Of a stretch of 64,000 bases of DNA, positions 7,468 through 59,194 are shown in pieces (the first letter of the stretch is position 1; every line of letters begins with the position of its first letter). The notes under the pieces are model-generated. The model made no database searches, was not told the origin of the DNA, and was given only the letters and a program-made list of their open reading frames with translations. The DNA is taken from the IMG/VR virus record IMGVR_UViG_3300028666_000022, positions 124,001 through 188,000 of that record, one strand, 5' to 3'. Made by a program: the position numbers and the translations under genes.

Positions 7468-7476
7468 TATAAATAC
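7468..7476 (-). promoter_or_regulatory. Putative late promoter GTATTTATA
   Basis: 16 nt upstream of the ATG at 7451. Confidence 0.6.
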
Positions 7477-14164: not shown

Positions 14165-14173
14165 TATAAATAC
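14165..14173 (-). promoter_or_regulatory. Putative late promoter GTATTTATA
   Basis: 15 nt upstream of the GTG at 14149. Confidence 0.6.
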
Positions 14174-18723: not shown

Positions 18724-20424
18724 TTAGTTTAGTTTAATTTGTTCATCTAAAATCTTTTCAATATTATCATAATCAAAATAGGGTATTCTAATTAATTTAA
18801 TGTTATTATCTCTAGCAAATTTATTTTTTATTTCATCATTGATTTGTCTTTGTTTAAATCCCTTTTCTCCACCAAAATGTTCAACTATTTCATAATGTTG
18901 TTTGCCATCAAATTCGATTAATATATTTTGTTCAGGTAAATAAAAATCAAATAATAATAAATTTATATTTTTACACCCTTCAAACATTTTTTCTTTCTCA
19001 TATAATATATTATTTTTTTCTAAAAATTTTCTAATTTTTCTTTCACCCTTACTTTCAGTACATTTTTTACAACCAGATTTACCGTTTATGTGCGTATGAG
19101 GTGTTTGTTCAAATTCTCCATGTATTGGACAGATAATTTTTATTTTAGTGCTATGATTAACATAAATTACTTTAGAATAATCATATTTAAAATCATGTAC
19201 AATATTTGCTTTTTCTATAAATTCTTCTGTTGTTAATATATTTGATGTCGCACTTTTTTCAATACCACATTTTATACAACCACTCGAAAAAACATGTCTA
19301 CTGGGTGGTTGCATAAACTCACCATGTATTGGACAAACTATTTTAACTTTGGTGTTACCATCCACATATTCAACCAAACTATAATCATATTTAAAATTAT
19401 GGAGAATATTAGCTTTCTCAATAAAATAATCTTTATCCAAATATTGATTACCACATTTAGGACACCCCGATTTTTGAGATATGTGAACTGTTGGTGTTTG
19501 TTTAAAAATACCATGTCCCTGTTTATTACACATTATCTCAACATTAATTTGACTACCAATATATTTTACTTTAGAATAATCATATTTATCACCATGTATA
19601 ATTTTGGCTCTCTCAATAAACTCTTTAGTTGTTATATATTTATCACTACATTTTGGACAATTATGTTTATAGTGAGAAGCAGGTGTTTGTTCAAAAACAT
19701 CATGTTCAGGACAAATTATTTTTACTTTTGTATCACAATTCACATATTCAACCAAACTATAATTATATTTATTATTGTGAATTTCATTTGCTTTTTTTAT
19801 AAATTCTTTTGTTGTTAATTTTGTTTCAGTACATTTTGGACAATTATTACTATGATAGATATGATTATTGGGGGTTTGTAAAAATTCTCCATGTTCTCTA
19901 CAAATAATCTTAACTTTAGTACCGCCATTTACATAATCAACTAAATTATAATCGTATTCATCACCATGTATTTTTTTCGCATCAACAATAAACTGTTCTT
20001 TTGATTTAACAAATTTTAAACGACAAACTTCTGTACCGCACTGAGGGCAGTTATGATTACTAAGATGGTTCATTGGAGTTTGCATAAACTCTCCATGAAT
20101 CGAACATACAATCTTAAGTTTAGTCCTACAATTAACATATTTACTTAAACTATAATCATATTTATCACCATGAATTTTTTGCGCTTTTTCAATAAAATTT
20201 TCAGTAGTTAATGTATTTTTTAATTTCATTGCTTCACGACCACATTCATAACAACCACATTCTGAATGTGTTTGTGGTGTTTGTAAAAATTCTCCATGTA
20301 TTGGGCAAATTATTAAAACCTTAGTTACATAATCAACATATTTCACCTTAGAATAATCATACTTATTACCATGAAAATTTCTTGCTTTTTCAATAAACTC
20401 TTCAGTTGTTAAAAATTTACCCAT
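18724..20424 (-). CDS. Homing-type endonuclease: 7 zinc-binding repeats plus C-terminal Vsr/PD-(D/E)XK domain
   Basis: 7 x EFI.KA..IH..KYDYS...Y....KV.IICP.HG.F.QTP..H....C..C; SKGE...FDFYLP..NILIEFDG.QH. Confidence 0.85.
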   Translation of the reverse strand: MGKFLTTEEFIEKARNFHGNKYDYSKVKYVDYVTKVLIICPIHGEFLQTPQTHSECGCYECGREAMKLKNTLTTENFIEKAQKIHGDKYDYSLSKYVNCRTKLKIVCSIHGEFMQTPMNHLSNHNCPQCGTEVCRLKFVKSKEQFIVDAKKIHGDEYDYNLVDYVNGGTKVKIICREHGEFLQTPNNHIYHSNNCPKCTETKLTTKEFIKKANEIHNNKYNYSLVEYVNCDTKVKIICPEHDVFEQTPASHYKHNCPKCSDKYITTKEFIERAKIIHGDKYDYSKVKYIGSQINVEIMCNKQGHGIFKQTPTVHISQKSGCPKCGNQYLDKDYFIEKANILHNFKYDYSLVEYVDGNTKVKIVCPIHGEFMQPPSRHVFSSGCIKCGIEKSATSNILTTEEFIEKANIVHDFKYDYSKVIYVNHSTKIKIICPIHGEFEQTPHTHINGKSGCKKCTESKGERKIRKFLEKNNILYEKEKMFEGCKNINLLLFDFYLPEQNILIEFDGKQHYEIVEHFGGEKGFKQRQINDEIKNKFARDNNIKLIRIPYFDYDNIEKILDEQIKLN

Positions 20425-30572: not shown

Positions 30573-30599
30573 AAAAAAGCCAACTATTTTTAGCTGGCT
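30573..30599 (-). terminator. Intrinsic terminator
   Basis: Minus strand AGCCAGCTA-AAAA-TAGTTGGCT followed by a T-run. Confidence 0.7.
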
Positions 30600-31144: not shown

Positions 31145-31153
31145 TATAAATAC
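31145..31153 (-). promoter_or_regulatory. Putative late promoter GTATTTATA
   Basis: 13 nt upstream of the ATG at 31131. Confidence 0.6.
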
Positions 31154-31165
31154 GTTGAAAAATAA

Positions 31166-31999
31166 TTATTTTAAGCCCTGTATTAAACTATCACCATATT
31201 TAATTCCATCAAAACCATGACTTTGTGCTTTTTCAACAATTGCCTTATTCTTAAGGTTAAGCACAGGCACATTATATTTTTCACTAAGGCTTTCAAAATT
31301 AACATGAGGAAACCAAACTTTAGCTAATACTTCTGTTGGTATTTGACTATCTTTATAATGAAGACCTAAATCATCAGTATCTAAAAGATTATCAAAATTA
31401 ATTTCATATTTATCATAACCTTCCATTGGTTTTAACATAAAAAAATTACCTATTACTGAATTTTCTTTAATTGGTTCTTTTCTGTATCCTATTATTGTTT
31501 TTTCGTTATTGCTTGGTTTTTCTGTTTGTATTGAATCATTATCTTCTTCTAAAGATTTTAAAAATTCATTATAACTAACACCGGAATTAATATCATTATT
31601 TGCATTTAAAGCATCTTGTCCTTCAACTTCTTCTAATTTTTGTTGTTCCTCATATTCATGAATATCTTGAATTTTATTCAAAATCCTACAAGCATCATTA
31701 AAACTAAGATTAACTTTAATTGCCTTAAGCGGAACATTATCGTTAATAGCTTTTACTAACTTGTGATGACCATCAATTACTTCATCATCTTTTGTTAACC
31801 AAATAGGATTTATGTCATTAAATTCAGCATTACCCACATCATCAGAAAAAACAAATGGTTGAGATACTTTTATTTTTTCAAATTCTTCGGGTTCAATCTG
31901 AGTGTAATTATAACCAATATTTTCTTCATCTAGTTTACTTGTCAATAAACCAATAGGTGCATTAAGTTGTGGTAAATAATGTGGTGATGCTTTACTCAT
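31166..31999 (-). CDS. ParB/sulfiredoxin-like domain protein with a second C-terminal domain
   Basis: PIWLTKDDEVIDGHHK; C-terminal HGFDGIKY. Confidence 0.65.
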   Translation of the reverse strand: MSKASPHYLPQLNAPIGLLTSKLDEENIGYNYTQIEPEEFEKIKVSQPFVFSDDVGNAEFNDINPIWLTKDDEVIDGHHKLVKAINDNVPLKAIKVNLSFNDACRILNKIQDIHEYEEQQKLEEVEGQDALNANNDINSGVSYNEFLKSLEEDNDSIQTEKPSNNEKTIIGYRKEPIKENSVIGNFFMLKPMEGYDKYEINFDNLLDTDDLGLHYKDSQIPTEVLAKVWFPHVNFESLSEKYNVPVLNLKNKAIVEKAQSHGFDGIKYGDSLIQGLK

Positions 32000-32012: not shown

Positions 32013-32021
32013 TATAAATAC
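32013..32021 (-). promoter_or_regulatory. Putative late promoter GTATTTATA
   Basis: 13 nt upstream of the ATG at 31999. Confidence 0.6.
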
Positions 32022-32092: not shown

Positions 32093-34144
32093 TTAATATT
32101 TAAATATTAAAGGTACTTGAATATCATTAATACTTGTATTACCAACCATCCAACCTAAATTTGGATTATTAAAAAATACTGATTGTAATGAATTATATGT
32201 TACCGGTAAATTTAATGTTTGTCTGGTCCAATTTTGACCACCATCATTAGTGTTCAATATGATAAAATTATTAGTATTATCATAACCAACAGCCCAACCA
32301 TTATGTTTATCAGTAAAATTAACTGATGATAAGTATCCATCTAATGAAATCAAATTCTGTATCCAATTATTACCACCATCTACTGTTTTAAAAATAAGAA
32401 TATTTCCATTATCATTAGTACCAACAATCCAACCAATGTTTTCATTAATAAAACTACATGATTGTAAATTGCCATCAATTAATGGTAAGGTTTGTTGAAT
32501 CCAATTATTACCACCATCTACTGTTTTTATTACAACTATTTTACTATCAGAAAAACCAACAGCCCATCCAATATTAGAATTTATAAATTGTAATGAATAT
32601 AATGTATTTCCAGTAACTGGTATTGTTTGTTCAATCCAATTTTGACCACCATCAGTTGTTTTCAACATAATGTTACTACCATTATTTTTATTTCCTACTG
32701 TCCAACCAACATTTCCATCGATAAACTGTATTGAAAATAATAAACCTGTTGTTGTTGGTGTTGTTTGTTCTATCCAATTTTGACCACCATCAGTTGTTTT
32801 TAATATTATACAATTAATATTTGCAACATTACTATAACCAACAGCCCATCCAACATTAGAATCAAGAAAAAATAATGATGTTAATATAATTGGATTAATT
32901 GGTGAATTTTGACGATTCCAACTTTCTCCACCATCTATTGTTTTTAATATTGTTGCATTGTTATTATAATCTGAACCAACTGTCCAACCAATATTATTAT
33001 TAATAAATTTAATACAATTTAATACTCCACTTATTTTTGGCTGAGAAGGTAATAACCAATTATTTCCTCCATTAATTGTATTCATTAATAATGTTTCATT
33101 TGTTGTTAAATTTTCACCACCAATCCAAACATTATTATTGTTTACTGGAAACACTTGTTTTAAATTAGAAGTAGTTATCGGTGAAGTTTCTTGTATCCAA
33201 TTTTGACCACCATTTGTTGTTTTCAATATTAAACCACCATTACCAACAATCCATCCATTATTAATATCAATAAATTTTATTGAATTTAAAATACCAATAC
33301 TTATCGGTGAAGTTTCTTGTATCCAATTTTGACCACCATTTGTTGTTTTTAAAATTATTGCATTATTACTGTTATTTTCTCCAACAGCCCAACCATTATT
33401 TAAATCAATAAAATAAATTGAGTTTAATGTACCACCACTAACTAGTAATGTTTGTTTTATCCAATTTTGACCACCATCTGTTGTTTTTAATATTAATTCA
33501 TTATTACTTTTATCTTTACCAACTGCCCAACCTACTGTAGAACTAATAAATCGTACTGAATTTAATGTACCAACAGTTGATGGTATTGTTTGTTGTTGCC
33601 AACTTATTCCACTATCGGTGCTATTATAAATAATTCCGTTTCCAAGATTATCAACCCCAACACTCCAGCCATTATCACCATCAATGAAATAAACCGAATT
33701 TAATGTTGTGTTAGTTAGTGATTGTGACACTGAATTCCAACCACTAACACTTCCATCATTAGTATATAATATAATTGCTTCATTATTTATGTTTTTTCCA
33801 ACAGCCCAACCATTATTAATATCAATAAATTGTATTGAATTTAATGTAGCTGCAATAGAAATTGATGATAATGTATGTATCCAATTTTGTCCACCATCTA
33901 TTGTTTTCATTAATATTATGAAACCTGATGAATCATTACCAACTAACCAACCATTATTTTCATCAATAAAATTGATTGAATTAATTATTCCATTTATTGT
34001 TGGTAGATTTTTTTGAACCCAATTCTTTTTCAACAATTCGTTTTCTGTTTTTGTTGTATTTTTAGTTGTAATGATGTTTTTTGTTACTACACCATTTTCT
34101 GTAATAACAATATTTTTTGTTATTGTCGTGCTTTTTTCTATCAT
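32093..34144 (-). CDS. YCF48/BNR (Asp-box) repeat beta-propeller protein, about 14 blades
   Basis: Repeated LNSI.F.D.N.GW.VG....ILKTTDGGQNW. Confidence 0.85.
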   Translation of the reverse strand: MIEKSTTITKNIVITENGVVTKNIITTKNTTKTENELLKKNWVQKNLPTINGIINSINFIDENNGWLVGNDSSGFIILMKTIDGGQNWIHTLSSISIAATLNSIQFIDINNGWAVGKNINNEAIILYTNDGSVSGWNSVSQSLTNTTLNSVYFIDGDNGWSVGVDNLGNGIIYNSTDSGISWQQQTIPSTVGTLNSVRFISSTVGWAVGKDKSNNELILKTTDGGQNWIKQTLLVSGGTLNSIYFIDLNNGWAVGENNSNNAIILKTTNGGQNWIQETSPISIGILNSIKFIDINNGWIVGNGGLILKTTNGGQNWIQETSPITTSNLKQVFPVNNNNVWIGGENLTTNETLLMNTINGGNNWLLPSQPKISGVLNCIKFINNNIGWTVGSDYNNNATILKTIDGGESWNRQNSPINPIILTSLFFLDSNVGWAVGYSNVANINCIILKTTDGGQNWIEQTTPTTTGLLFSIQFIDGNVGWTVGNKNNGSNIMLKTTDGGQNWIEQTIPVTGNTLYSLQFINSNIGWAVGFSDSKIVVIKTVDGGNNWIQQTLPLIDGNLQSCSFINENIGWIVGTNDNGNILIFKTVDGGNNWIQNLISLDGYLSSVNFTDKHNGWAVGYDNTNNFIILNTNDGGQNWTRQTLNLPVTYNSLQSVFFNNPNLGWMVGNTSINDIQVPLIFKY

Positions 34145-34174: not shown

Positions 34175-34693
34175 TTAAATATTTTTAGGTGTAATTCCCA
34201 TTTCATAGGGTGATTTTCCATTTTTAAATAAAAAGTTTAAGTAATACCATTGTTTAGGTGTTAATTTTTTATTCTTAATTGCAGCATTATATATTGTTTT
34301 AAAGAAATTATCATTAGTATATTTTGAATTTACATTATTCCATAGTTGTTTAATATAGTTTAAACTAACTTGTTTATCACCAACATCTACCATCTCTTTA
34401 TTAAGATCTTCTGTTAAAACAGCCATATCAGTTAATGTCATCAATAAATCTTTTTTTAATTTTTCATCGTGTGAAAAATCTTCATAATTATTTTGAAGAA
34501 ATTCAAGCACAGATGCTTTTGATGGATCTTGATAACTAACATTACCGTTTTGATTATTCCATTCATTATATTTTTTAATAAAAAAATCAATATTAACAAT
34601 TTTGTTATTAACTAAATATTTGCCATCAGCAATCTCACGATATTCTTCATTAAGAAAATTCTCGATTTCTTCAATAATTATTCTCTTAAGCAT
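34175..34693 (-). CDS. Probable head-associated protein with an IIEEIENFLNE leader
   Basis: Leader motif identical to an internal junction of the upstream polyprotein. Confidence 0.6.
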   Translation of the reverse strand: MLKRIIIEEIENFLNEEYREIADGKYLVNNKIVNIDFFIKKYNEWNNQNGNVSYQDPSKASVLEFLQNNYEDFSHDEKLKKDLLMTLTDMAVLTEDLNKEMVDVGDKQVSLNYIKQLWNNVNSKYTNDNFFKTIYNAAIKNKKLTPKQWYYLNFLFKNGKSPYEMGITPKNI

Positions 34694-37600
34694 AAAATGT
34701 TTTATTTTTTATTTGACTTACTTCAAGATCGTCAATAATATTTTTATTATTCATATATAATTCTTCTATTTTTAATGGTGTATTTTTAAATAATCGTATT
34801 TCTTTTTCATCTTCACCTATATTAATATCCATGTTTAATGCTACTGTATTTTCCCAATCAATATTTTCTTCTTTTATTGAAGATTTAATTAAAACCCTAT
34901 TATTTCCACTTTGTCCCCAATGTGCTTCTGCTGCATTTTCTTCCCAAGACCAATAAATACCTAAATGTTTTCCTTCTTTCATTAAATGAATAACCCAACC
35001 ATTTTCAACAGTCATCATCCTCCAAATATCAATTCTATTATCTGGTTTTATTTTACTTCTTATATTTCGAACAACATCATAATACCTATCACTTAATTCA
35101 TTCATCAACCAATCTTGAAATTCTTTACTATTTTCATCTATTTCATCATTCCATTCAATATTATTTTCATATTTAAATCTATTGACAAATGGTTCATAAT
35201 TATTGTTCTGTTTTAAAATTTTAAGATATTCTGGAGTAATAACATCATTAGTATTTAATGAATGAACTGATTTTTCATTAAGAAAATTCTCGATTTCATT
35301 AACTATAGTTTCATTTAATTTACTTTCCTCTTTACCATAATATGTTATTTTATCATTAATGAATTCAATATTCGGATTTTTAATCTTTGCTTTATCTAAA
35401 AATTTTTGATAAAAGGGTGCAGCTTCATCTCTGGTTGGAAGTTTATTCCATGATTGTAAATTTAAGGATTTATCATATGTATTTCTACGTGAATCTGGTA
35501 TCATCGTTTCGTTCGATTCACCCAATAAAAACTTGTTTGTTTTCCCATACCTTTGTACAGTAACAAATTCAGTAGGTAAGGAACTATACCAATCTAAAGG
35601 AATTCTTTTTAGTATACCAATTTTATATAAACCATTAATTAAATTATCGTGCACTACCGAATTTTTTTCTTCAACAAATAAATTTCCTTCTCTATCAATT
35701 AATCCCCTTACACTAGGAGCAATATTATTTAATGATTTTGGATTTTTAATTATATTAATGTCTTTTTTATAATCTGTATCTATTTTAATTATCTCTTCTT
35801 GATTTTCTTTATTCATTTCTTTATTATATTTATTATTAAATTCACCATTAGTGTTTTGTATATTAAATTCTTTTTCAGCATAAGTATCACCTACACCTTC
35901 ATCTTCTATTTGTTTTTCATATTCAGGAAAATCCTCTTCTTTTAATGATTTAATGTTAAAATTTTTAACATCACCCTGATTACAAGCAATGCTAGTATTA
36001 CCTAATCCACCAAGCCTACATTTCTTCTTAACATCAACACTGCTACTACCAGCCATTGAGGATAATACTCTTTCGTTTACATTATATTCATGACCATTAT
36101 TTGAAATAATATTATCATTGCCACTTGGTACATTATTATCAGTAAGAACAGAAGTATCATTTTGATCATACAATGGAAAATCATCCCTTCCAATTCCATC
36201 ATCAGTTGAGAATTTTGAAGTACCATCTTCGTCAATATTTGAATTTTTTATTTTATTATAAAAATTTATTAAATCATTTTCTCTTAAAACAGGAATTTTA
36301 TTAAATCTTAAATTTTTATATGCTTGTAATTTATGATTCCCATCAATATGATTATTATTTCTTAATATAATAAATGGTCTTTTACCATTTTTAATAACAT
36401 CTTCCCATGCAAGAATTACTTCATTATTCAATTTTTGATTTTCTTTATATTTTTCAATGTTTTTAATATCTTCAATTTTAACTAATGGTTCTGCTGCTTT
36501 TCTCATTTCATATCTAACATCAAAATCAGTAATTATATTTTTTAAAAATTCTTGAACATTTTTTGAATTAAATACTTGTTCCCTTAATTTATTTAAATTA
36601 TCATTATTTATTTCTTTTGTTTCATCAATTTCAACTTCTTCTGGTTGCTTATTTGATTTAGCATAATAATTACCAAATCCAACATCAAAAAATCCTATAC
36701 TTCCATCTTTTTTATAACCAAGATTTTCTGGATTCAAATAATCCATACTTTCAACACCATGTTTTTTTGCTTCTTCAGCAATTTTTAATAAACCATTAAA
36801 ATATTCAGCATCTTCAGGATTTTTAGATAAATATTTATTAATTTTATCTTTATTTACATTATTACCATATCCATCAATATAAAAATCAATAACATCACTT
36901 AGTTTAACACCTAATATTTTTTCAAATGCAAAATTTAACTTATTTCTAATTTTAATAAAATAATCACCATTAGTTTTTAATTTTTCTAAAATAATCACAT
37001 ATAATTCATCTGCATTTGATTTAGATTTAATTGAAAATACGTTATATGGTTCAGCTATATATTTCAATTGTTTACCAATAAGACCTAAATTTTCAACAGC
37101 TTCACTTTTATCTGAAGTCACTTTTAATATTTTATCATTACCAATATCATAAGCAGCACCAAAATTACCACTACCAATAAATTTAGGTTGATTTAATTTA
37201 TATATTTCAGCTACTTTATTAGCTATTGTATCAGCATTTTCTCTACTAACACTCTCATCCAATAATTCTTCACCTTCAGGTAACATGATATTATTTTGTT
37301 GAGGAATTTGAATATCATTAGCTCTATATCCACCAATATCAAAATAAGTAAGAACACCATTTTTATAACCTAAATTTTCAACATTGCTATAATCATTTGA
37401 TTTAATTGCTAATTCATCTAATTCTTTTTTTATTTCAAATAAATCTTGAATAAATTTATATGCTTTTTCTCTATCTGCTTGTACTATATTTGCTTCGGGT
37501 TTATTTGTTAATATTTGTTTACTTGATTCAATAAATTCATCATATTTCTTTTTCTTTAGTAAAATCATTAAACCAACAAAATCATCGTTTTCTGAAGCAG

Positions 37601-38957
37601 ATAATTCATTTATTATTTTAATATATTTTTTAAACTCATCTATGGGCTTATTAATAATATTATCTTCAATAAGTGCATAAACAGCTAAATTTTTTTCACT
37701 ATCAATTAGTTTATATATTGAATATATATCAACTAATGATTTTGGTTTAGCTCTTTGTATTTTTAATCCTGCATCCACTTCACTAACATCAGTAGTTAAT
37801 TTCAATATTTTATTACCATTTATTGAATATGCAAATCCATAACTACCACCTCCAAGATATTGTGGTTGTCCTAAATTCATTTTTTCAGAAAACATAGTGG
37901 CAATATTATTTGCATATTCATTATCTAATCTCATTGGTTCAACAACAGGAGTATCTTCTTCATTTAGTTCAACCATTTCTTTTTCTAATGGTTCTCTATC
38001 GTAGAATTTACCTCTAATTAAATAATCTTGTAACTCTAATAAATTATTATAAAATTTCTTTTTATTATCAACATGATTTAATACTTCATTAATATTATTT
38101 ACACAATCATGAAAATTATCCAATAAATAAGGAGCACTTGGTAATACTCTGGTTGGATATTTATCTCTATTTAACACAAATGAAATGAAATCTTCATTAA
38201 TAACACCATTACCATCAGAAACACTATATGGCATTAATCCCCACATATTATGTCTAACTTCACCAGTATTACCTATATCTGAAAGAATATCATCATTACC
38301 ATCTTGAAAATTATAAAGTTCATAAATTTTCTGTGATTGTTTTTTCTGTGGATTATAATAGGTGTCATAAACCTCATCACTAAGACCATAATCAGTTAAA
38401 ACAATTGTAGGTTGACCATCATGAAGCACTTCGCCATATGAACTTGGCCTTCCAAAATCTCCAACTTCAGCAGAATGATTATCAATAAAATTAGTTAAAT
38501 CTTGTACAAATTCATTGTTCGCTAATTCTTCTTCAATTTCACTATCTTGTCCAAAAATCTTCCTACCACCATTCATTTGAGATTTATAATTTCTGAGATA
38601 ATAAAATAAATCATTTAAACTTCTAATACCAGTTAATTCTTTAATTCTTCTTTCAGTAACTTTTTTTGCTTTCTCAGCAATTAACCAAGTATCATCGTCT
38701 GCAAATTCAAATATTTTAGTTAAAATAAAATCATTATTACCATTAGCATTCACACTAGCTTCTTCAGCATTTTGTGCAACACCCTTAGTATTTTTAGCTA
38801 ATTTAAAAACTTTAGTTCCATCAATATCATAAACAATTCTACCTGAACCACTACCGATTCTAGTTAAGTTTTGATTCGCATAATCAATTTTACCTTTAAA
38901 GGATTTTATATTAAGAAATTCTTTTAGAAAATTTTGTAAAAAATCGTTGTAAGACAT
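34686..38957 (-). CDS. Polyvalent protein: three protein-kinase-like domains, a ParB-like domain and an ADP-ribosyltransferase-like domain
   Basis: GxGxxG + K.(F/L)K + D(Y/I/V)G three times; IDGNHK; IWR...YWSW...EKE (R-S-E). Confidence 0.75.
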   Translation of the reverse strand: MSYNDFLQNFLKEFLNIKSFKGKIDYANQNLTRIGSGSGRIVYDIDGTKVFKLAKNTKGVAQNAEEASVNANGNNDFILTKIFEFADDDTWLIAEKAKKVTERRIKELTGIRSLNDLFYYLRNYKSQMNGGRKIFGQDSEIEEELANNEFVQDLTNFIDNHSAEVGDFGRPSSYGEVLHDGQPTIVLTDYGLSDEVYDTYYNPQKKQSQKIYELYNFQDGNDDILSDIGNTGEVRHNMWGLMPYSVSDGNGVINEDFISFVLNRDKYPTRVLPSAPYLLDNFHDCVNNINEVLNHVDNKKKFYNNLLELQDYLIRGKFYDREPLEKEMVELNEEDTPVVEPMRLDNEYANNIATMFSEKMNLGQPQYLGGGSYGFAYSINGNKILKLTTDVSEVDAGLKIQRAKPKSLVDIYSIYKLIDSEKNLAVYALIEDNIINKPIDEFKKYIKIINELSASENDDFVGLMILLKKKKYDEFIESSKQILTNKPEANIVQADREKAYKFIQDLFEIKKELDELAIKSNDYSNVENLGYKNGVLTYFDIGGYRANDIQIPQQNNIMLPEGEELLDESVSRENADTIANKVAEIYKLNQPKFIGSGNFGAAYDIGNDKILKVTSDKSEAVENLGLIGKQLKYIAEPYNVFSIKSKSNADELYVIILEKLKTNGDYFIKIRNKLNFAFEKILGVKLSDVIDFYIDGYGNNVNKDKINKYLSKNPEDAEYFNGLLKIAEEAKKHGVESMDYLNPENLGYKKDGSIGFFDVGFGNYYAKSNKQPEEVEIDETKEINNDNLNKLREQVFNSKNVQEFLKNIITDFDVRYEMRKAAEPLVKIEDIKNIEKYKENQKLNNEVILAWEDVIKNGKRPFIILRNNNHIDGNHKLQAYKNLRFNKIPVLRENDLINFYNKIKNSNIDEDGTSKFSTDDGIGRDDFPLYDQNDTSVLTDNNVPSGNDNIISNNGHEYNVNERVLSSMAGSSSVDVKKKCRLGGLGNTSIACNQGDVKNFNIKSLKEEDFPEYEKQIEDEGVGDTYAEKEFNIQNTNGEFNNKYNKEMNKENQEEIIKIDTDYKKDINIIKNPKSLNNIAPSVRGLIDREGNLFVEEKNSVVHDNLINGLYKIGILKRIPLDWYSSLPTEFVTVQRYGKTNKFLLGESNETMIPDSRRNTYDKSLNLQSWNKLPTRDEAAPFYQKFLDKAKIKNPNIEFINDKITYYGKEESKLNETIVNEIENFLNEKSVHSLNTNDVITPEYLKILKQNNNYEPFVNRFKYENNIEWNDEIDENSKEFQDWLMNELSDRYYDVVRNIRSKIKPDNRIDIWRMMTVENGWVIHLMKEGKHLGIYWSWEENAAEAHWGQSGNNRVLIKSSIKEENIDWENTVALNMDINIGEDEKEIRLFKNTPLKIEELYMNNKNIIDDLEVSQIKNKTFYA

Positions 38958-38995: not shown

Positions 38996-39004
38996 TATAA
39001 ATAC
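38996..39004 (-). promoter_or_regulatory. Putative late promoter GTATTTATA
   Basis: Upstream of the polyvalent protein. Confidence 0.55.
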
Positions 39005-39787: not shown

Positions 39788-39796
39788 TATAAATAC
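39788..39796 (-). promoter_or_regulatory. Putative late promoter GTATTTATA
   Basis: Upstream of 39757. Confidence 0.55.
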
Positions 39797-39800
39797 TATA

Positions 39801-40685
39801 TTATTTGAAAAAAGTACCTTTATTTGGATTTTTTTGATTAGTTTCTTTTATTGCACTATTTTCCATTTTTTTAAAAAAACTAGTATCAACCTTTTGATTA
39901 GGCTTAATATACTTTATATATAAATCTTTTAAATTACCTACTATTGATTCTGGTGGTAACTTAGTTTTAATATTCTCATCTTTTAATACTAAATCACCAT
40001 TTTCATCTGTAACAACCAATAGTTTTTCTGGAGATTTCTTTTTAATTCCTTTAGCAATTGCCCATAAATGTTCAATCTCGTCAGCAGTAGCTTCTCTTTG
40101 TTTTTTACCTGCATTTGAAAAATATCTGAACTTTTCTTTTTGTCCAGCAAATGCCGATGTTGGTTCAGGTAATTTTTGTTTAATTACATCAGGCTTTTCT
40201 ATTGAATCAATACCAGTTGCTTGTGTTTGTGGTTTACCTGTACTAATCTGAACTGCAGCAACAATATCTCTCATTTGAGAATCATTTGGATTATAACCTT
40301 CTGGCATTTTTGATTCATCAGTACTAAAATACTTACCAGTAGGAAGAAATGATGTTATTTTATCAACTCTAAATAATCTCCATCCATGTTTTGTCCTACC
40401 TTTAGGATCACTATATTTTTTATTACTATCTGAAGCACCAGCCTCTTGCCACGCTCTTAATAATAAATAATCACCACCTTCTTTGGTCGTTTTTCCTAAC
40501 GTGTAACCACGAATTGTCCTGTATCCTTTTTTTAGTGTATTATCTCCGGCGTAGTATATATAAACAATTTTATGTTTATTAATTGCATCAACAACAGTAT
40601 TTTCATCAACCCCTTCTTTTAAAAGTTGACGAAAATGATTCACATTATCAAAAAATTGTTTAACTTCGTTAAGCATTATATTCAT
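39801..40685 (-). CDS. WYL-domain protein
   Basis: AINKHKIVYIYY...R.I..Y.LG...LLRAWQ...GWRLFRVDKI. Confidence 0.8.
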   Translation of the reverse strand: MNIMLNEVKQFFDNVNHFRQLLKEGVDENTVVDAINKHKIVYIYYAGDNTLKKGYRTIRGYTLGKTTKEGGDYLLLRAWQEAGASDSNKKYSDPKGRTKHGWRLFRVDKITSFLPTGKYFSTDESKMPEGYNPNDSQMRDIVAAVQISTGKPQTQATGIDSIEKPDVIKQKLPEPTSAFAGQKEKFRYFSNAGKKQREATADEIEHLWAIAKGIKKKSPEKLLVVTDENGDLVLKDENIKTKLPPESIVGNLKDLYIKYIKPNQKVDTSFFKKMENSAIKETNQKNPNKGTFFK

Positions 40686-42546
40686 ATATTAAACTACCAC
40701 AATCATAAATATTTAAACAATGTTTTTTATGCTCATCATTATAATATTTAATTCTTTTACCAACACTAAAATACCACATATGTGGTTCTGTTACTTTAAC
40801 CAATTTAAAATTATTTAAAGAAATATTTTTTTCTGAATAATATCTTCTATCAAAAGAAATAATTATTTTTGTTTGTGAATATTTTTTAATTAAAAAATCA
40901 ATTAAATTATTTTCTACATCTAAAATTAAATTATTTAATTTATTACAAAAATTAATAATATTTAAACCATTATTAAATTCATTAATAGACATAACATAAA
41001 CCAATTCATTATTATAATATAAACCTAATTGAATATTACTTTTATTATATTCATTAATACTATTTTCAATAATAAAATTTTTAGCAACATTTTCATCTAG
41101 TTCAATAATTTTACAATCACTAAAATTTATTGTATGATTATAGCGATTTAATTTAGATTTTATTATCGATTTAACCACTTCTTTTTTATGTAACCATTCA
41201 TCTTCAAAAACATGCAATAATTGAATTTCTTGTTTTTCACATTCGATGGTTTTATTTAAATGATATTTAATATCTTTAAATTTAGTTGAATGCCAAAATA
41301 AACCATTGTATTCGATTGCTAATTTATTATCTGGAATAAGAACATCTAATTCTAATTTATTTAATATTAAAATATCGTTTTCAAGAATACTAATATTATT
41401 TTCAACTAAAAATTCTTTTATTTCTTTTTCTGAAATAGATGATGAATCATTAACTGAGTAACATTGAGTACAAATTTTATTGTTTGTATTATGAATTCTA
41501 TCGTAAAAAAGATCTTTATCAATTTCAAACTGAGAATGTTTGCTACAATAATTATCAATGATTATTGTATTATCGGTTAATTTTATATTTGAAATGTCTA
41601 AATTAATTAATTTAGCAATATCTTTTTTATACTTTTCTTGTTTTGTGTTTTTTATTTTTTTGTTAATCTCTTTATTTTGTGATGGATTTTCACAGCCATA
41701 TCTTTCTAAATTTGTTTTCTTTGATTTATTTTTTATTTCTTTATTTTGTTGTGGATTTTCAAATCCAAATTTAATTATGTTTGTTTGCTTAGTTTTTTCT
41801 TTTATTTCTTCATTTTGCGTGGGAGATTTAACACCATATCGTTCTATGTTTGTACCATCCTTTTTTTTCTTACTTTCATTACTTTGTGTAGAATATTCAA
41901 CTCCATATTTTTTTAAACATGTTTGTTTTGATTTTTCTTTTATTTCTTCATTTTGTAATCCATATTCAGTACCATATTTTTTTAGATTCGTTTGTTTAAC
42001 TTGCTCTTTATTTGAATCAAGCATTAGATTACATTTAACACCAAAATTATCTATGTTTTTCTGTTCAATTTTTTCTCTAATTTCACTATTTTGACTAGGA
42101 TATTCAACACCATATTTTTCGATACATGTTTCTCTTGACTTTTTATTTACCTTTTCGTTTAGTAAACTACATTCAGTTCCATATTTTTCTAAACTAGTTT
42201 TTACTGTTTTTTTTCTAATTTCCTTATTTTGTTGTGGATTTTCACAGCCATATTTTATTATGCATGTTTTTTTTCTTTTTTCTTTGGTTGATTTAGAATT
42301 ATATCTACATTTTTTTGAACAAGTTTGTTTATAACCAGCAGAAAAACCTAAGAATTTAACAATATTAATTTCACAACAATTACATTTTGGTGGTAAATCA
42401 ATATTGTTAATATAATTATATAACATTTGACTCCAATCAATATTTTTAAAATTTTTATTAAACTCTATAATTTCACGATATTTCTCATTTGAGAATTTTT
42501 TAATGAAAATTCTTTTACCATAAAATTTATCAATTTCATTTAACAT
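40669..42546 (-). CDS. Homing-type endonuclease: KYG repeats plus Vsr/Hef-like nuclease domain
   Basis: About 9 x K.T..(K)YG.E...Q..EI..K; ELD..IP..KLAIEYNG..WHS...HVFEDEW. Confidence 0.8.
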   Translation of the reverse strand: MLNEIDKFYGKRIFIKKFSNEKYREIIEFNKNFKNIDWSQMLYNYINNIDLPPKCNCCEINIVKFLGFSAGYKQTCSKKCRYNSKSTKEKRKKTCIIKYGCENPQQNKEIRKKTVKTSLEKYGTECSLLNEKVNKKSRETCIEKYGVEYPSQNSEIREKIEQKNIDNFGVKCNLMLDSNKEQVKQTNLKKYGTEYGLQNEEIKEKSKQTCLKKYGVEYSTQSNESKKKKDGTNIERYGVKSPTQNEEIKEKTKQTNIIKFGFENPQQNKEIKNKSKKTNLERYGCENPSQNKEINKKIKNTKQEKYKKDIAKLINLDISNIKLTDNTIIIDNYCSKHSQFEIDKDLFYDRIHNTNNKICTQCYSVNDSSSISEKEIKEFLVENNISILENDILILNKLELDVLIPDNKLAIEYNGLFWHSTKFKDIKYHLNKTIECEKQEIQLLHVFEDEWLHKKEVVKSIIKSKLNRYNHTINFSDCKIIELDENVAKNFIIENSINEYNKSNIQLGLYYNNELVYVMSINEFNNGLNIINFCNKLNNLILDVENNLIDFLIKKYSQTKIIISFDRRYYSEKNISLNNFKLVKVTEPHMWYFSVGKRIKYYNDEHKKHCLNIYDCGSLIYEYNA

Positions 42547-44309: not shown

Positions 44310-44318
44310 TATAAATAC
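44310..44318 (-). promoter_or_regulatory. Putative late promoter GTATTTATA
   Basis: 15 nt upstream of the ATG at 44294. Confidence 0.6.
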
Positions 44319-50254: not shown

Positions 50255-51268
50255 TTATTTAGTATTAGTTAAAATATATTCGTTTATTTCATTACATAAT
50301 AATTCAATATTTTTATCTACATCTTTTAAAAATTCTCTCTCATTAATATAAATCATTTTACATCCAAAGTTTTCAACTAAAAATTTTTGTTTTTTTAAAT
50401 CTTTTTCAATATTCTTTTTACTATAATGTCTAGGTTCATTCCATTCAATACATATATTATATTTTTCTATATATCCATCTATCCAATATCTTACAAATTT
50501 CTTTTCTCCACCATTTAAACCATGTTGAATTTGTAAATTTAATTTTTCTGAAAGCATATCTAAATAAATTATTGAATTAACATTATATGATGGGACATAT
50601 TTCACATAAATTTCACCATATTTTTTAATCGTTGTTTGTTGTGCTTTTTCTCTAATCTCTTTATTTTGCATAGGATTTTCAGTTCCATATTTTTCTAAAT
50701 TTGTTTGTTTAACCTTTTCTTTACATTCATCAGTTTGACTATAGTTTTCAGTTCCATATTTATTTATGGAATTTATTTTTATGTTTTCTTTAAACTCATT
50801 AGTTTTTGAATAATGATCAACACCATATTTTTCCAAATTTTTATTTTTTGTTTTTTCTCTAATTTCCTTATTTGAAATATGATATTCACAACCATACTTA
50901 TTTAAATCTGTTTGTTTTGTCTTTTCTCTAATTTCTTTATTTTGCATAGGATATTCATTACCATATTTATTTAAATTTGTTTTTTTATATTTATTTACAG
51001 AACATTTATCTGAACAACCATAAAATAATTTACCATTTTTTGTATTTTTATTATAAACTTTATATGTTAAAAATTTTTCCTTACTACAAATATCACATTT
51101 AACATGTACTAATACATGACTTCCCATTTTTAGATCAGTAACTTTAACTAAAAAAATATCATACATTTTTGTAAAAACATATCCTTTATCAATAAAATAT
51201 TTTTTATTACCTGAAACCCATTTCATTTCTACAAATTCATCTGAAATCACACTAATTAAATTAAACAC
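50255..51268 (-). CDS. Homing-type endonuclease: Zn ribbon, KYG repeats, PD-(D/E)XK domain
   Basis: KCDIC...GCSDKC; KYG repeats; YWIDGY...ICIEWNE..H. Confidence 0.75.
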   Translation of the reverse strand: MFNLISVISDEFVEMKWVSGNKKYFIDKGYVFTKMYDIFLVKVTDLKMGSHVLVHVKCDICSKEKFLTYKVYNKNTKNGKLFYGCSDKCSVNKYKKTNLNKYGNEYPMQNKEIREKTKQTDLNKYGCEYHISNKEIREKTKNKNLEKYGVDHYSKTNEFKENIKINSINKYGTENYSQTDECKEKVKQTNLEKYGTENPMQNKEIREKAQQTTIKKYGEIYVKYVPSYNVNSIIYLDMLSEKLNLQIQHGLNGGEKKFVRYWIDGYIEKYNICIEWNEPRHYSKKNIEKDLKKQKFLVENFGCKMIYINEREFLKDVDKNIELLCNEINEYILTNTK

Positions 51269-53768: not shown

Positions 53769-53777
53769 TATAAATAC
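53769..53777 (-). promoter_or_regulatory. Putative late promoter GTATTTATA
   Basis: 14 nt upstream of the ATG at 53754. Confidence 0.6.
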
Positions 53778-58237: not shown

Positions 58238-59194
58238 TTAATTTTTAATATTATTATTTACATCATCTTTATATTTCCAAATATAACCTCCTGCAGTTTT
58301 TGCTCTACTTCTTAAACAATTAGATATTAAACCGCAAGATAAGTTATTGATTCTTTCTGCTTCAGCAATAGATAAATATTCACCTAAATAAACATTATTT
58401 ATCGTATATTTACATATTGCTCTTATATAATATTTTTCTTCATGTTCATATTTTTCAATATTTTCGGGTATTTCATTCTTATAATACCAATAAAAATTAC
58501 CTGCTTGTTTTCTTTTTTTGTTTAAACATTTATTTATATTTGGTTGAGGAATATCTATTATTTTAGATGCCTCCTCTTGACTTTTAAATTCTCTAATAAA
58601 TTCACCATTTAATGAATATTGAACTATCGGTATATTACTTTTACGTGTTTCCTTAAATTTAAATGAATTTGCTTTTTCTTTAGAAAAGAAAAAATACATA
58701 TTTTTGTATGAATTTCTTCGTTTTTGATCTATTACTCTTGATATTGCAGGTATATTAGTATCATAAAAATCAGCAACTTCTGTAATTGATGTAAATTCTT
58801 TTAAATATTCACCAGTTTCTGAATATTGAAAAACTCTTTTTTTTGAGGAATTTCTACAACCTCCATCACCTCCATTAGTCAAATTAGTTAAGTTAACACC
58901 TTGATCTTTATATTTTTTAATGTAGAAAATTTCTAATAATTCATGTTCATATTTATTATTTTCTTTGTTAAAAACATAATTACACTCATCAATAATTTTC
59001 ATTTCAGGCTTTAATCCAGAAACAAGTATTTTATTTATAATATTATTTTTATGTGGATTTTTTTCTCTTTTTTTACCATATACATTAATATGTTGATTAT
59101 ACCTTCTTTTTAAATTTTCAGTAAAACCCACATAAAAAACCTCATTATTTCTAGGATCGACTAAAGTATAAATATAAACTTTCTTATCTGACAT
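58238..59194 (-). CDS. GIY-YIG homing endonuclease with three NUMOD1-like repeats
   Basis: YIYTL.DPR...FYVG; LTNLTNGGDG; (Q/K)Y...G..I.EF.S..EA repeats. Confidence 0.85.
   Translation of the reverse strand: MSDKKVYIYTLVDPRNNEVFYVGFTENLKRRYNQHINVYGKKREKNPHKNNIINKILVSGLKPEMKIIDECNYVFNKENNKYEHELLEIFYIKKYKDQGVNLTNLTNGGDGGCRNSSKKRVFQYSETGEYLKEFTSITEVADFYDTNIPAISRVIDQKRRNSYKNMYFFFSKEKANSFKFKETRKSNIPIVQYSLNGEFIREFKSQEEASKIIDIPQPNINKCLNKKRKQAGNFYWYYKNEIPENIEKYEHEEKYYIRAICKYTINNVYLGEYLSIAEAERINNLSCGLISNCLRSRAKTAGGYIWKYKDDVNNNIKN

Follow-up and report, generated by a model that had tools for sequence, protein, structure and literature searches.

The open reading frame (ORF) at 34686..38957 on the minus strand of a 64,000-nucleotide stretch of the virus record IMGVR_UViG_3300028666_000022 (positions 124,001 to 188,000 of that record, hereafter the window) likely encodes a polyvalent multi-effector protein of a jumbo phage, i.e. 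a single chain equipped with host-modifying or anti-defence enzymes. In the ORF listing it is intact, with an ATG start and 1423 amino acids (aa). Polyvalent proteins, as described by Iyer, Burroughs, Anand, de Souza and Aravind in 2017, combine several conflict-related catalytic domains in one chain (PMC5512222). The phage protein studied here carries at least two distinct domains of this type, namely kinase-like (in three copies), ParB/sulfiredoxin (Srx)-like and ADP-ribosyltransferase (ART)-like ones, and its relatives are shuffled mosaics of such parts. The case is carried by the folds, the conservation of catalytic residues, a tandem duplication and the shuffling of cassettes across at least 160 homologues. 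The original prediction, made from the sequence alone, had proposed a multi-enzyme protein for host takeover or anti-defence, an idea that agrees with the published polyvalent concept (PMC5512222). ORF listing and motif mapping recovered the 1423-aa ORF and every listed motif where they had been placed, and the domain calls are right; what had been overlooked are a further domain (domain X), a conserved disordered segment (module M) and a downstream 172-aa cassette, and the first kinase-like domain proved atypical in that it lacks the Asn. As we picture it, the constant part of the protein would comprise one atypical and two canonical C-lobe-less kinase-like domains followed by the disordered, Cys-containing module M, and the variable part the ParB/Srx-like domain, domain X and an ART-like domain of the R-S-E type, with a further cassette contributed by the coupled 172-aa ORF.

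Kinase-like array and downstream cassettes

Two AlphaFold models were built from homologue alignments, one for aa 1-790 with a mean predicted local distance difference test score (pLDDT) of 81.8 and one for aa 780-1423 with a mean of 76. These models and the fold searches run with them place a kinase-like fold in all three N-terminal domains and a putative ART-like fold at the C-terminus, as the original prediction required. Searches with the whole protein against Pfam, NCBIfam and the PDB (phmmer) gave no match, and the only match in a curated library was PHROG 4301 (function unknown) over aa 27-207. Among 50,697 phage records, megablast and tblastn matched only domain 1, in the Xanthomonas jumbo phages XacN1 and Xoo-sp13; the tblastn search of these records returned nothing for domain X or domain Y. 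A search of 5.8 billion proteins yielded 162 homologues of 800-2400 aa, and the family numbers at least 160 clusters at 90% identity. It is confined to uncultivated jumbo phages, and the three kinase-like domains, module M and domains X and Y belong to no curated family.

All three N-terminal domains are predicted to adopt a protein-kinase-like fold that ends just past the DFG-like Asp. The elements of the bilobal core that were examined, i.e. the N-lobe β-sheet with αC, the catalytic loop and the DFG motif, are all present; the alignment of domains 2 and 3 to CDK2 extends only over residues 1-152/154, which cover these same elements, and the substrate-binding C-lobe is missing. Across 67 homologues, each domain keeps its G-loop Gly, β3 Lys, αC Glu, catalytic Asp, Asn and DFG-like Asp without exception or in no fewer than 90% of the sequences, and hence the kinase motifs are real rather than chance resemblances. 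Domain 2 (aa 343-556; 37290..37931, minus strand) and domain 3 (aa 569-775; 36633..37253, minus strand) are tandem duplicates, with 28% identity (E 1e-17), and both retain the full catalytic set of G-loop, Lys, Glu, Asp, Asn and DFG Asp. In domain 2 these residues are G374, K386, E393, D522, N528 and D540, within the motifs GGGSYG (369-374), DYSNVENLG (522-530) and FDIGG (539-543); in domain 3 they are G597/G600, K612, E619, D739, N745 and D758, within GSGNFG (595-600), DYLNPENLG (739-747) and FDVGF (757-761). Foldseek searches of the PDB with the two domains recovered only protein-kinase-like enzymes (MTR kinase, APH(2''), ULK1, PRPK and IRAK4), and a cluster partly annotated as Phage_T7_kinase matches domain 3 with a TM-score of 0.56. 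PBP2x, which appeared among the PDB profile matches of domains 2 and 3 with E 0.02-0.3, was judged spurious, and a dedicated search for standalone kinases of the domain 2 type found none.

Domain 1 (aa 1-205; 38343..38957, minus strand) shows the same order of secondary-structure elements at a pLDDT of ~80-92, and retains G35/G37 (GSGSGR, aa 35-40), K52, E66, D167 and D189 (TDYG, aa 188-191; nt ~38396-38385). Its residues 1-192 match methylthioribose kinase and Bud32/TP53RK in AFDB Swiss-Prot, the SteC kinase is its top sequence match in the PDB (profile E 6e-4), and it matches a 215-aa viral cluster with a TM-score of 0.84. Given that the standalone homologue of this domain in phage XacN1, ORF170, has the canonical DYSNIKNWG...IIDAG, D167 can be equated with the catalytic Asp, while both Asn residues are replaced (R170 and S173). 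Domain 1 is thus probably an atypical kinase or a pseudokinase in which ATP binding is still likely. It is followed by an extension and linker (aa 206-335; 37953..38342, minus strand) that begins with the acidic loop DGNDD..MW..P..V.DG....NE, of low pLDDT at 206-251, continues with helices at 255-315 and holds the conserved INE253-255 and LNE331-333.

The region around IDGNHK (aa 871-876; nt ~36347-36330) had been called ParB-like, and a fold search bore this out. The domain comprises aa 780-905 (36243..36620, minus strand), of which the core, aa 825-897, is predicted to have the α+β fold of the ParB/Srx superfamily. Its motif takes the form IDG[NQH]HK in the 4 known sequences, with Lys 876 invariant, and this Lys stands where the conserved active-site Arg of the GxxR/DGHHR type would be expected. 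Pfam ParB_N does not match the segment, and only three close homologues of it were found, each within another giant phage protein. A ParB_N match in homologue P0270 was set aside as support, being a second, adjacent ParB domain rather than the homologous segment.

Module M (aa 907-1008; 35934..36239, minus strand) has the sequence [ILVM]xE-DG(S/T)SKFS...G.D.FP.Y..ND.S ... ER..S.M.GSS.V.VKKKCRLGGLGNTS.ACNQGD. It directly follows the kinase array in ~110 of the 119 homologues listed, and some homologues carry a cassette between its two halves. Its pLDDT is 30-45 despite the strong conservation of its sequence; a conserved linear motif with such low values suggests a docking, targeting or processing signal.

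Domain X (aa 1020-1224; 35286..35900, minus strand) is a predicted α/β domain with no assigned fold family. Like domain Y, it is modelled with pLDDT above 90 within the aa 780-1423 model (84-98 over domain X itself), and it found no convincing structural neighbour in the PDB (Foldseek, VIA wide), AFDB clusters, BFVD or the Atlas; neither Pfam nor the PDB profile search matched it, and a feature search of the ESM Atlas was uninformative. It occurs in 1-3 copies in ~38 homologues, each time after the leader EGVGDxYAEKxF, and among its residues E, N-P, R and G are invariant, with H, R and N conserved at 90% or more. A relationship between domains X and Y was considered and rejected.

The C-terminal domain Y (aa 1225-1423; 34689..35285, minus strand) consists of a helical N-terminal half and a core, aa 1302-1421, that by the geometry of its R, S/T and ExE elements is a putative R-S-E (cholera-toxin-like) ART. 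In the model, R1313 (IWR, 1311-1313) lies in strand 1308-1317, W1336 and S1337 (YWSW, 1335-1338) in strand 1335-1337, and E1386 (EKE, 1384-1386; nt 34808-34800) opens strand 1386-1389. Among 68 aligned members, [WYF]-R1313, W1336, E1384 and E1386 are present in all 68 and S/T1337 in 66. The R-S-E residues proposed from the sequence were recovered in a putative ART fold, and no described ART family was matched. No Pfam ART model, including Mod_ADP_RT and ADPrib_exo_Tox, recognised any of the 68 members, no PDB profile match was obtained, and the ESM Atlas feature search gave only weak DRAT, Mod and exotoxin leads. Among viral structures, domain Y is matched best, with E 6e-7, by a Phi92_gp246-like protein of Klebsiella phage Eowyn. 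Assignment to ART-PolyVal (PF18760) was rejected: hhalign against the ART-PolyVal domains of six homologues gave a probability of 0.25%, and those domains have YHG[ST]/FS[ST] motifs with a His where domain Y has Arg. An exhaustive HMMER search for the domain Y family recovered 865 cluster representatives, mostly standalone proteins of ~200 aa. We also observed giant proteins of 1600-2300 aa that lack the kinase array and contain three Y-type ART-like domains each (P0162, P0173, P0243, P0253 and P0262), and a Y-family gene standing alone (205 aa; L006 723-1814), which on its short metagenomic contig is located directly upstream of a gp25-like baseplate gene. Two rhizosphere samples hold, in addition, a divergent contig whose similarity is limited to parts of domain Y (window 34735-34962), with 9 differences in 80 nt and ~100 nt replaced; it represents a related phage or an allelic cassette from the same habitat.

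The 172-aa ORF downstream, cassette Z (34175..34693, minus strand), appears from its position to be translationally coupled to the large ORF: its ATG falls inside the last codons of the latter and overlaps the stop (ATGCTTAA). Residues 3-99 of cassette Z are 60-69% identical to segments fused within homologous polyvalent proteins, and its leader, IEEIENFLNEE, is similar to the NEIENFLNEKS with which domain Y begins. As the junction between the two ORFs is identical, with no indels, in contigs of three other rhizosphere metagenomes, the split is real and not an assembly error.

Across the homologues, aa 1-780 (45-64% identity) and aa 907-1008 form the constant part; aa 780-905 are found in very few of them, aa 1020-1224 in ~38 and aa 1225-1423 in ~8. 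Three kinases in one phage chain had been considered unusual, and this did not hold within the family: it is the commonest arrangement, seen in ~68 of the 119. Behind the shared N-terminal array lie more than 25 different downstream architectures, whose cassettes include CCA-adding/poly(A) polymerases, 2H phosphoesterase domains (which also score as the anti-CBASS protein Acb1), GNAT, NleE-like methyltransferases and ART-PolyVal.

Genomic setting and expression signals

The window is recognisable as phage DNA by genes for a family-B DNA polymerase, an SNF2-like helicase, a NUDIX protein and a baseplate wedge protein, and by several homing endonuclease genes, and the size of the contig that bears the protein, 339,898 bp, marks a jumbo phage. 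The source is an uncultivated jumbo phage of ~340 kb from rhizosphere/soil metagenomes, and contigs with the polyvalent-gene stretch are present in at least 11 rhizosphere metagenome runs. Its DNA polymerase is ~22% identical to those of Salinibacter phages, with no close isolate. The window is AT-rich (GC ~25%) and every gene lies on the minus strand. Upstream of the polyvalent gene are replication genes and downstream of it genes with no assigned function, with the baseplate 16-20 kb away. A sister phage of 339,914 bp is syntenic over the helicase, DNA polymerase, NUDIX, TnpB insertion, polyvalent gene and a separate CCA/poly(A)-polymerase gene. In it (L002 8733-9962, 15511-17136) a TnpB/IS605-family gene is directly upstream of the polyvalent gene and the CCA-adding/poly(A) polymerase directly downstream; the latter is thus a separate gene in the sister phage and fused in most homologues.

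The 9-mer GTATTTATA occurs 15 times in the window, always on the coding (minus) strand, vs 3.9 +/- 2.0 copies expected, and almost all copies are 12-70 nt upstream of ORF starts; examples on the minus strand are 7468-7476, 14165-14173, 31145-31153, 32013-32021, 39788-39796, 44310-44318 and 53769-53777. The copy at 38996..39004 (minus strand) precedes the start codon of the polyvalent gene by 39 nt. To judge by its placement, the motif probably serves as a promoter element of the phage. The core, TATTTATA, corresponds in reverse complement to the T4 late-promoter box, TATAAATA, a likeness that may mean nothing. A scan of the window for σ70 promoters stayed at background (162 vs 152) and gives no timing. 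Only 2 of the 47 window ORFs have a Shine-Dalgarno-like motif upstream and the leaders are A/T-only, a pattern typical of Shine-Dalgarno-independent initiation as in Bacteroidota, which by this analogy hints at the host.

Two genes downstream of the polyvalent gene is a 683-aa ORF (32093-34144, minus strand) with 8 BNR/YCF48-like β-propeller repeats (Pfam PSII_BNR, E 1e-54), unusual in a phage, which may be a glycan-binding or structural protein. The next ORF, of 277 aa (31166-31999, minus strand), may add another ParB-like protein to the neighbourhood of the polyvalent gene, going by a weak match to phrog_12305 (E 2e-4). A terminator-like hairpin with a T-run after a 114-aa ORF (30578-30599, minus strand) suggests by its position that the polyvalent, 172-aa, 683-aa, 277-aa and 114-aa ORFs could form one transcription block, within which internal GTATTTATA motifs are also present. 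At least four ORFs of the homing-endonuclease type (HNH, LAGLIDADG-like and NUMOD) are scattered amid the replication and structural genes on the minus strand (18724-20424, 40669-42546, 50255-51268 and 58238-59194), one of them upstream of the polyvalent gene at a distance of 1.7 kb. No tRNA genes are present in the 64-kb window.

Proposed delivery and activity of the encoded domains

We infer that the domains are active enzymes that, early in the infection, modify macromolecules of the host (or the phage). The battery would alter the host or counter its defences by transferring phosphate from ATP, by ADP-ribosylation that depends on NAD+ and by a nucleotide- or DNA-directed activity of the ParB/Srx-like domain, and it could reach its targets either packaged in the capsid and injected, whether or not proteolysis separates the domains, or through early expression. 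The original prediction had favoured a specific form of the former route, in which late synthesis is followed by targeting to the prohead, where a prohead protease of the T4 type cuts the chain after (I/L)xE, and the individual enzymes are then injected together with the DNA. We regard this unproven polyprotein-cargo mechanism as rather doubtful. The (I/L/V)-x-E sites that it pointed out in the linkers are indeed there: an [ILVM]xE occurs at every linker and is conserved (INE253 in 60 of 67 sequences, LNE331 in 56, LPE559 in all 67, LDE566 in 53 and IDE777 in 45, plus the site at 908), one such site directly precedes the EDG of module M, and both the linkers and module M are predicted to be disordered and hence accessible. 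This pattern is compatible with processing at putative protease sites. The excess over chance is modest, with 43 [ILVM]xE observed vs 30.2 +/- 4.7 in shuffled sequences. The protein is rich in Glu, and Glu-rich amphipathic helices yield such tripeptides anyway; moreover, several conserved sites (93, 211 and 656) are inside folded domains. Domain Y and cassette Z share a leader ending in FLNE, and even the standalone 200-aa relatives retain this E at 90% or more. The phage has a T4-like baseplate, and T4 itself offers a precedent in its diverse internal proteins that bear the capsid targeting sequence (CTS) MKTYQEFIAE and are cut once. The N-terminus of our family, MTYxEF..NFLxE, is loosely like the CTS, but this likeness may be a coincidence and was downgraded, because the model confidently places the N-terminal helices within the kinase fold and the standalone XacN1 ORF170 does not have the MTYxEF start. 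Weighing further against cleavage, the 64-kb window revealed no gene recognisable as one for a prohead protease, portal or capsid protein, and the polyvalent gene follows those for DNA polymerase, NUDIX and helicase.

That same gene order speaks for a protein that is never packaged, a multi-enzyme made early or midway in infection beside the replication genes and active in the cytoplasm, possibly as one unprocessed chain, which we consider a realistic possibility, if short of an even chance. In both this phage and its sister the polyvalent gene is 6-8 kb downstream of the genes for DNA polymerase B, SNF2-like helicase and NUDIX; it has its own copy of GTATTTATA, a motif also found ahead of the helicase operon, and no peptidase domain was detected in the protein by Pfam, PHROG and NCBIfam scans or fold searches. 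On the other hand, GTATTTATA also precedes genes with no assigned function and possibly structural ones and hence defines no timing class, all genes share one strand with baseplate genes within 16-20 kb, and polyvalent proteins have been argued to be typically delivered with the DNA (PMC5512222). As for substrates, the enzymes might act on RNA, mainly tRNA, with the kinase cores serving as ArkI-like tRNA 2'-kinases or Bud32-like ATPases in tRNA repair or protection and the ART modifying nucleic acid. The CCA and 2H cassettes of homologues and the structural neighbours ArkI and Bud32 point this way; we nevertheless think it unlikely, as ordinary Ser/Thr protein kinases head the fold matches, a substrate cannot be assigned from structural neighbours, and the protein in hand has neither a CCA nor a 2H cassette. 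Furthermore, the 2H domains also score as Acb1, so that the cassettes do not have to belong to a single pathway. Still less probable is that the kinase-like domains are non-catalytic, a structural chassis such as an ejection or inner-body protein or a cassette carrier. A constant N-terminus with variable C-termini does recall polymorphic toxins and their trafficking regions, the Mg-binding Asn is gone from domain 1, and the C-lobe is missing; yet domains 2 and 3 show no variation at Lys, Glu, catalytic Asp, Asn and DFG Asp over 67 sequences that are only ~50% identical, which argues for retained catalysis in these two.

Returning to the polyvalent multi-effector, a bolder extension of that reading, which we offer as an outside chance, is that its N-terminal part is a delivery and processing chassis that loads interchangeable cassettes into the capsid and frees them by proteolysis, with domain Y, in its 865 representatives, a new clade of phage R-S-E ARTs and domain X a new enzyme fold. 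The chassis would then comprise the kinase array, module M, the leaders EGVGDxYAEK (domain X) and EIENFLNE (domain Y and cassette Z) and the conserved [ILVM]xE sites. If true, this would make it a phage counterpart of the polymorphic toxins that works without the usual metallopeptidase (MPTase). With its 865 members, the Y family would extend the phage ADP-ribosyltransferases by a new clade. Polyvalent proteins are predicted but barely tested weapons of phage counter-defence, and a constant chassis with swappable cassettes (Acb1-like, CCA-adding, GNAT, NleE-like and two kinds of ART) amounts to a natural experiment, and to a good place in which to seek new anti-defence enzymes and a phage delivery route.

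Comparison with known phage and host systems

The kinase-like cores find parallels in T7 gp0.7, the Salmonella effector kinase SteC, Bud32/PRPK and the archaeal ArkI, which likewise are ~200-aa cores with G-loop, Lys, catalytic Asp and DFG-like Asp and with the C-lobe reduced or missing. Bud32/TP53RK and ArkI are structural neighbours of the domains described here; domains 2 and 3, however, have no significant sequence match to T7 gp0.7, SteC, Bud32 or ArkI, and differ from them in standing in tandem within a giant protein. The ParB/Srx superfamily, with the ParB N-domain, Noc, KorB, Srx, SerK, Osa and P1 DdrB, is represented here by a domain that has neither the helix-turn-helix nor the dimerisation domains. 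With T4 Alt, ModA and ModB the protein would share a phage ART of the R-S-E type, the T4 enzymes modifying host proteins. T4 carries Alt and its internal proteins in the capsid, has its prohead protease trim them after (L/I)xE and injects them; the internal proteins are diverse anti-defence proteins that have only the short CTS MKTYQEFIAE in common and are cut once. For domain Y, tblastn found no sequence similarity to any GenBank phage protein, and the likeness of the leaders is weak.

The closest kinship is with the polyvalent proteins, whose set includes monophyletic Ser/Thr-type kinases that lack the C-terminal subdomain and whose repertoire extends to ART, GNAT, Pol-β nucleotidyltransferase, 2H and ParB domains and to nearby cassette ORFs (PMC5512222). 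C-lobe-less kinases (likened by description), ART-like and ParB/Srx-like domains, shuffled cassettes and small cassette ORFs nearby are shared with the present system, as are GNAT, Pol-β-type nucleotidyltransferase and 2H domains with its homologues. It departs from them in the tandem array of three kinases, module M, domain X and its residence in a jumbo phage, and in a putative ART that belongs to an unrecognised R-S-E family rather than to ART-PolyVal; its ParB-like domain is not detectably of the DdrB type. A zincin-like MPTase is frequent in polyvalent proteins, although not universal, whereas neither this nor any other peptidase is found here, and linkage to MuF, portal or the virion RNA polymerase (vRNAP) is likewise not seen. 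The ORF is accordingly not the first of its class but a variant of the polyvalent class assembled from differing parts.

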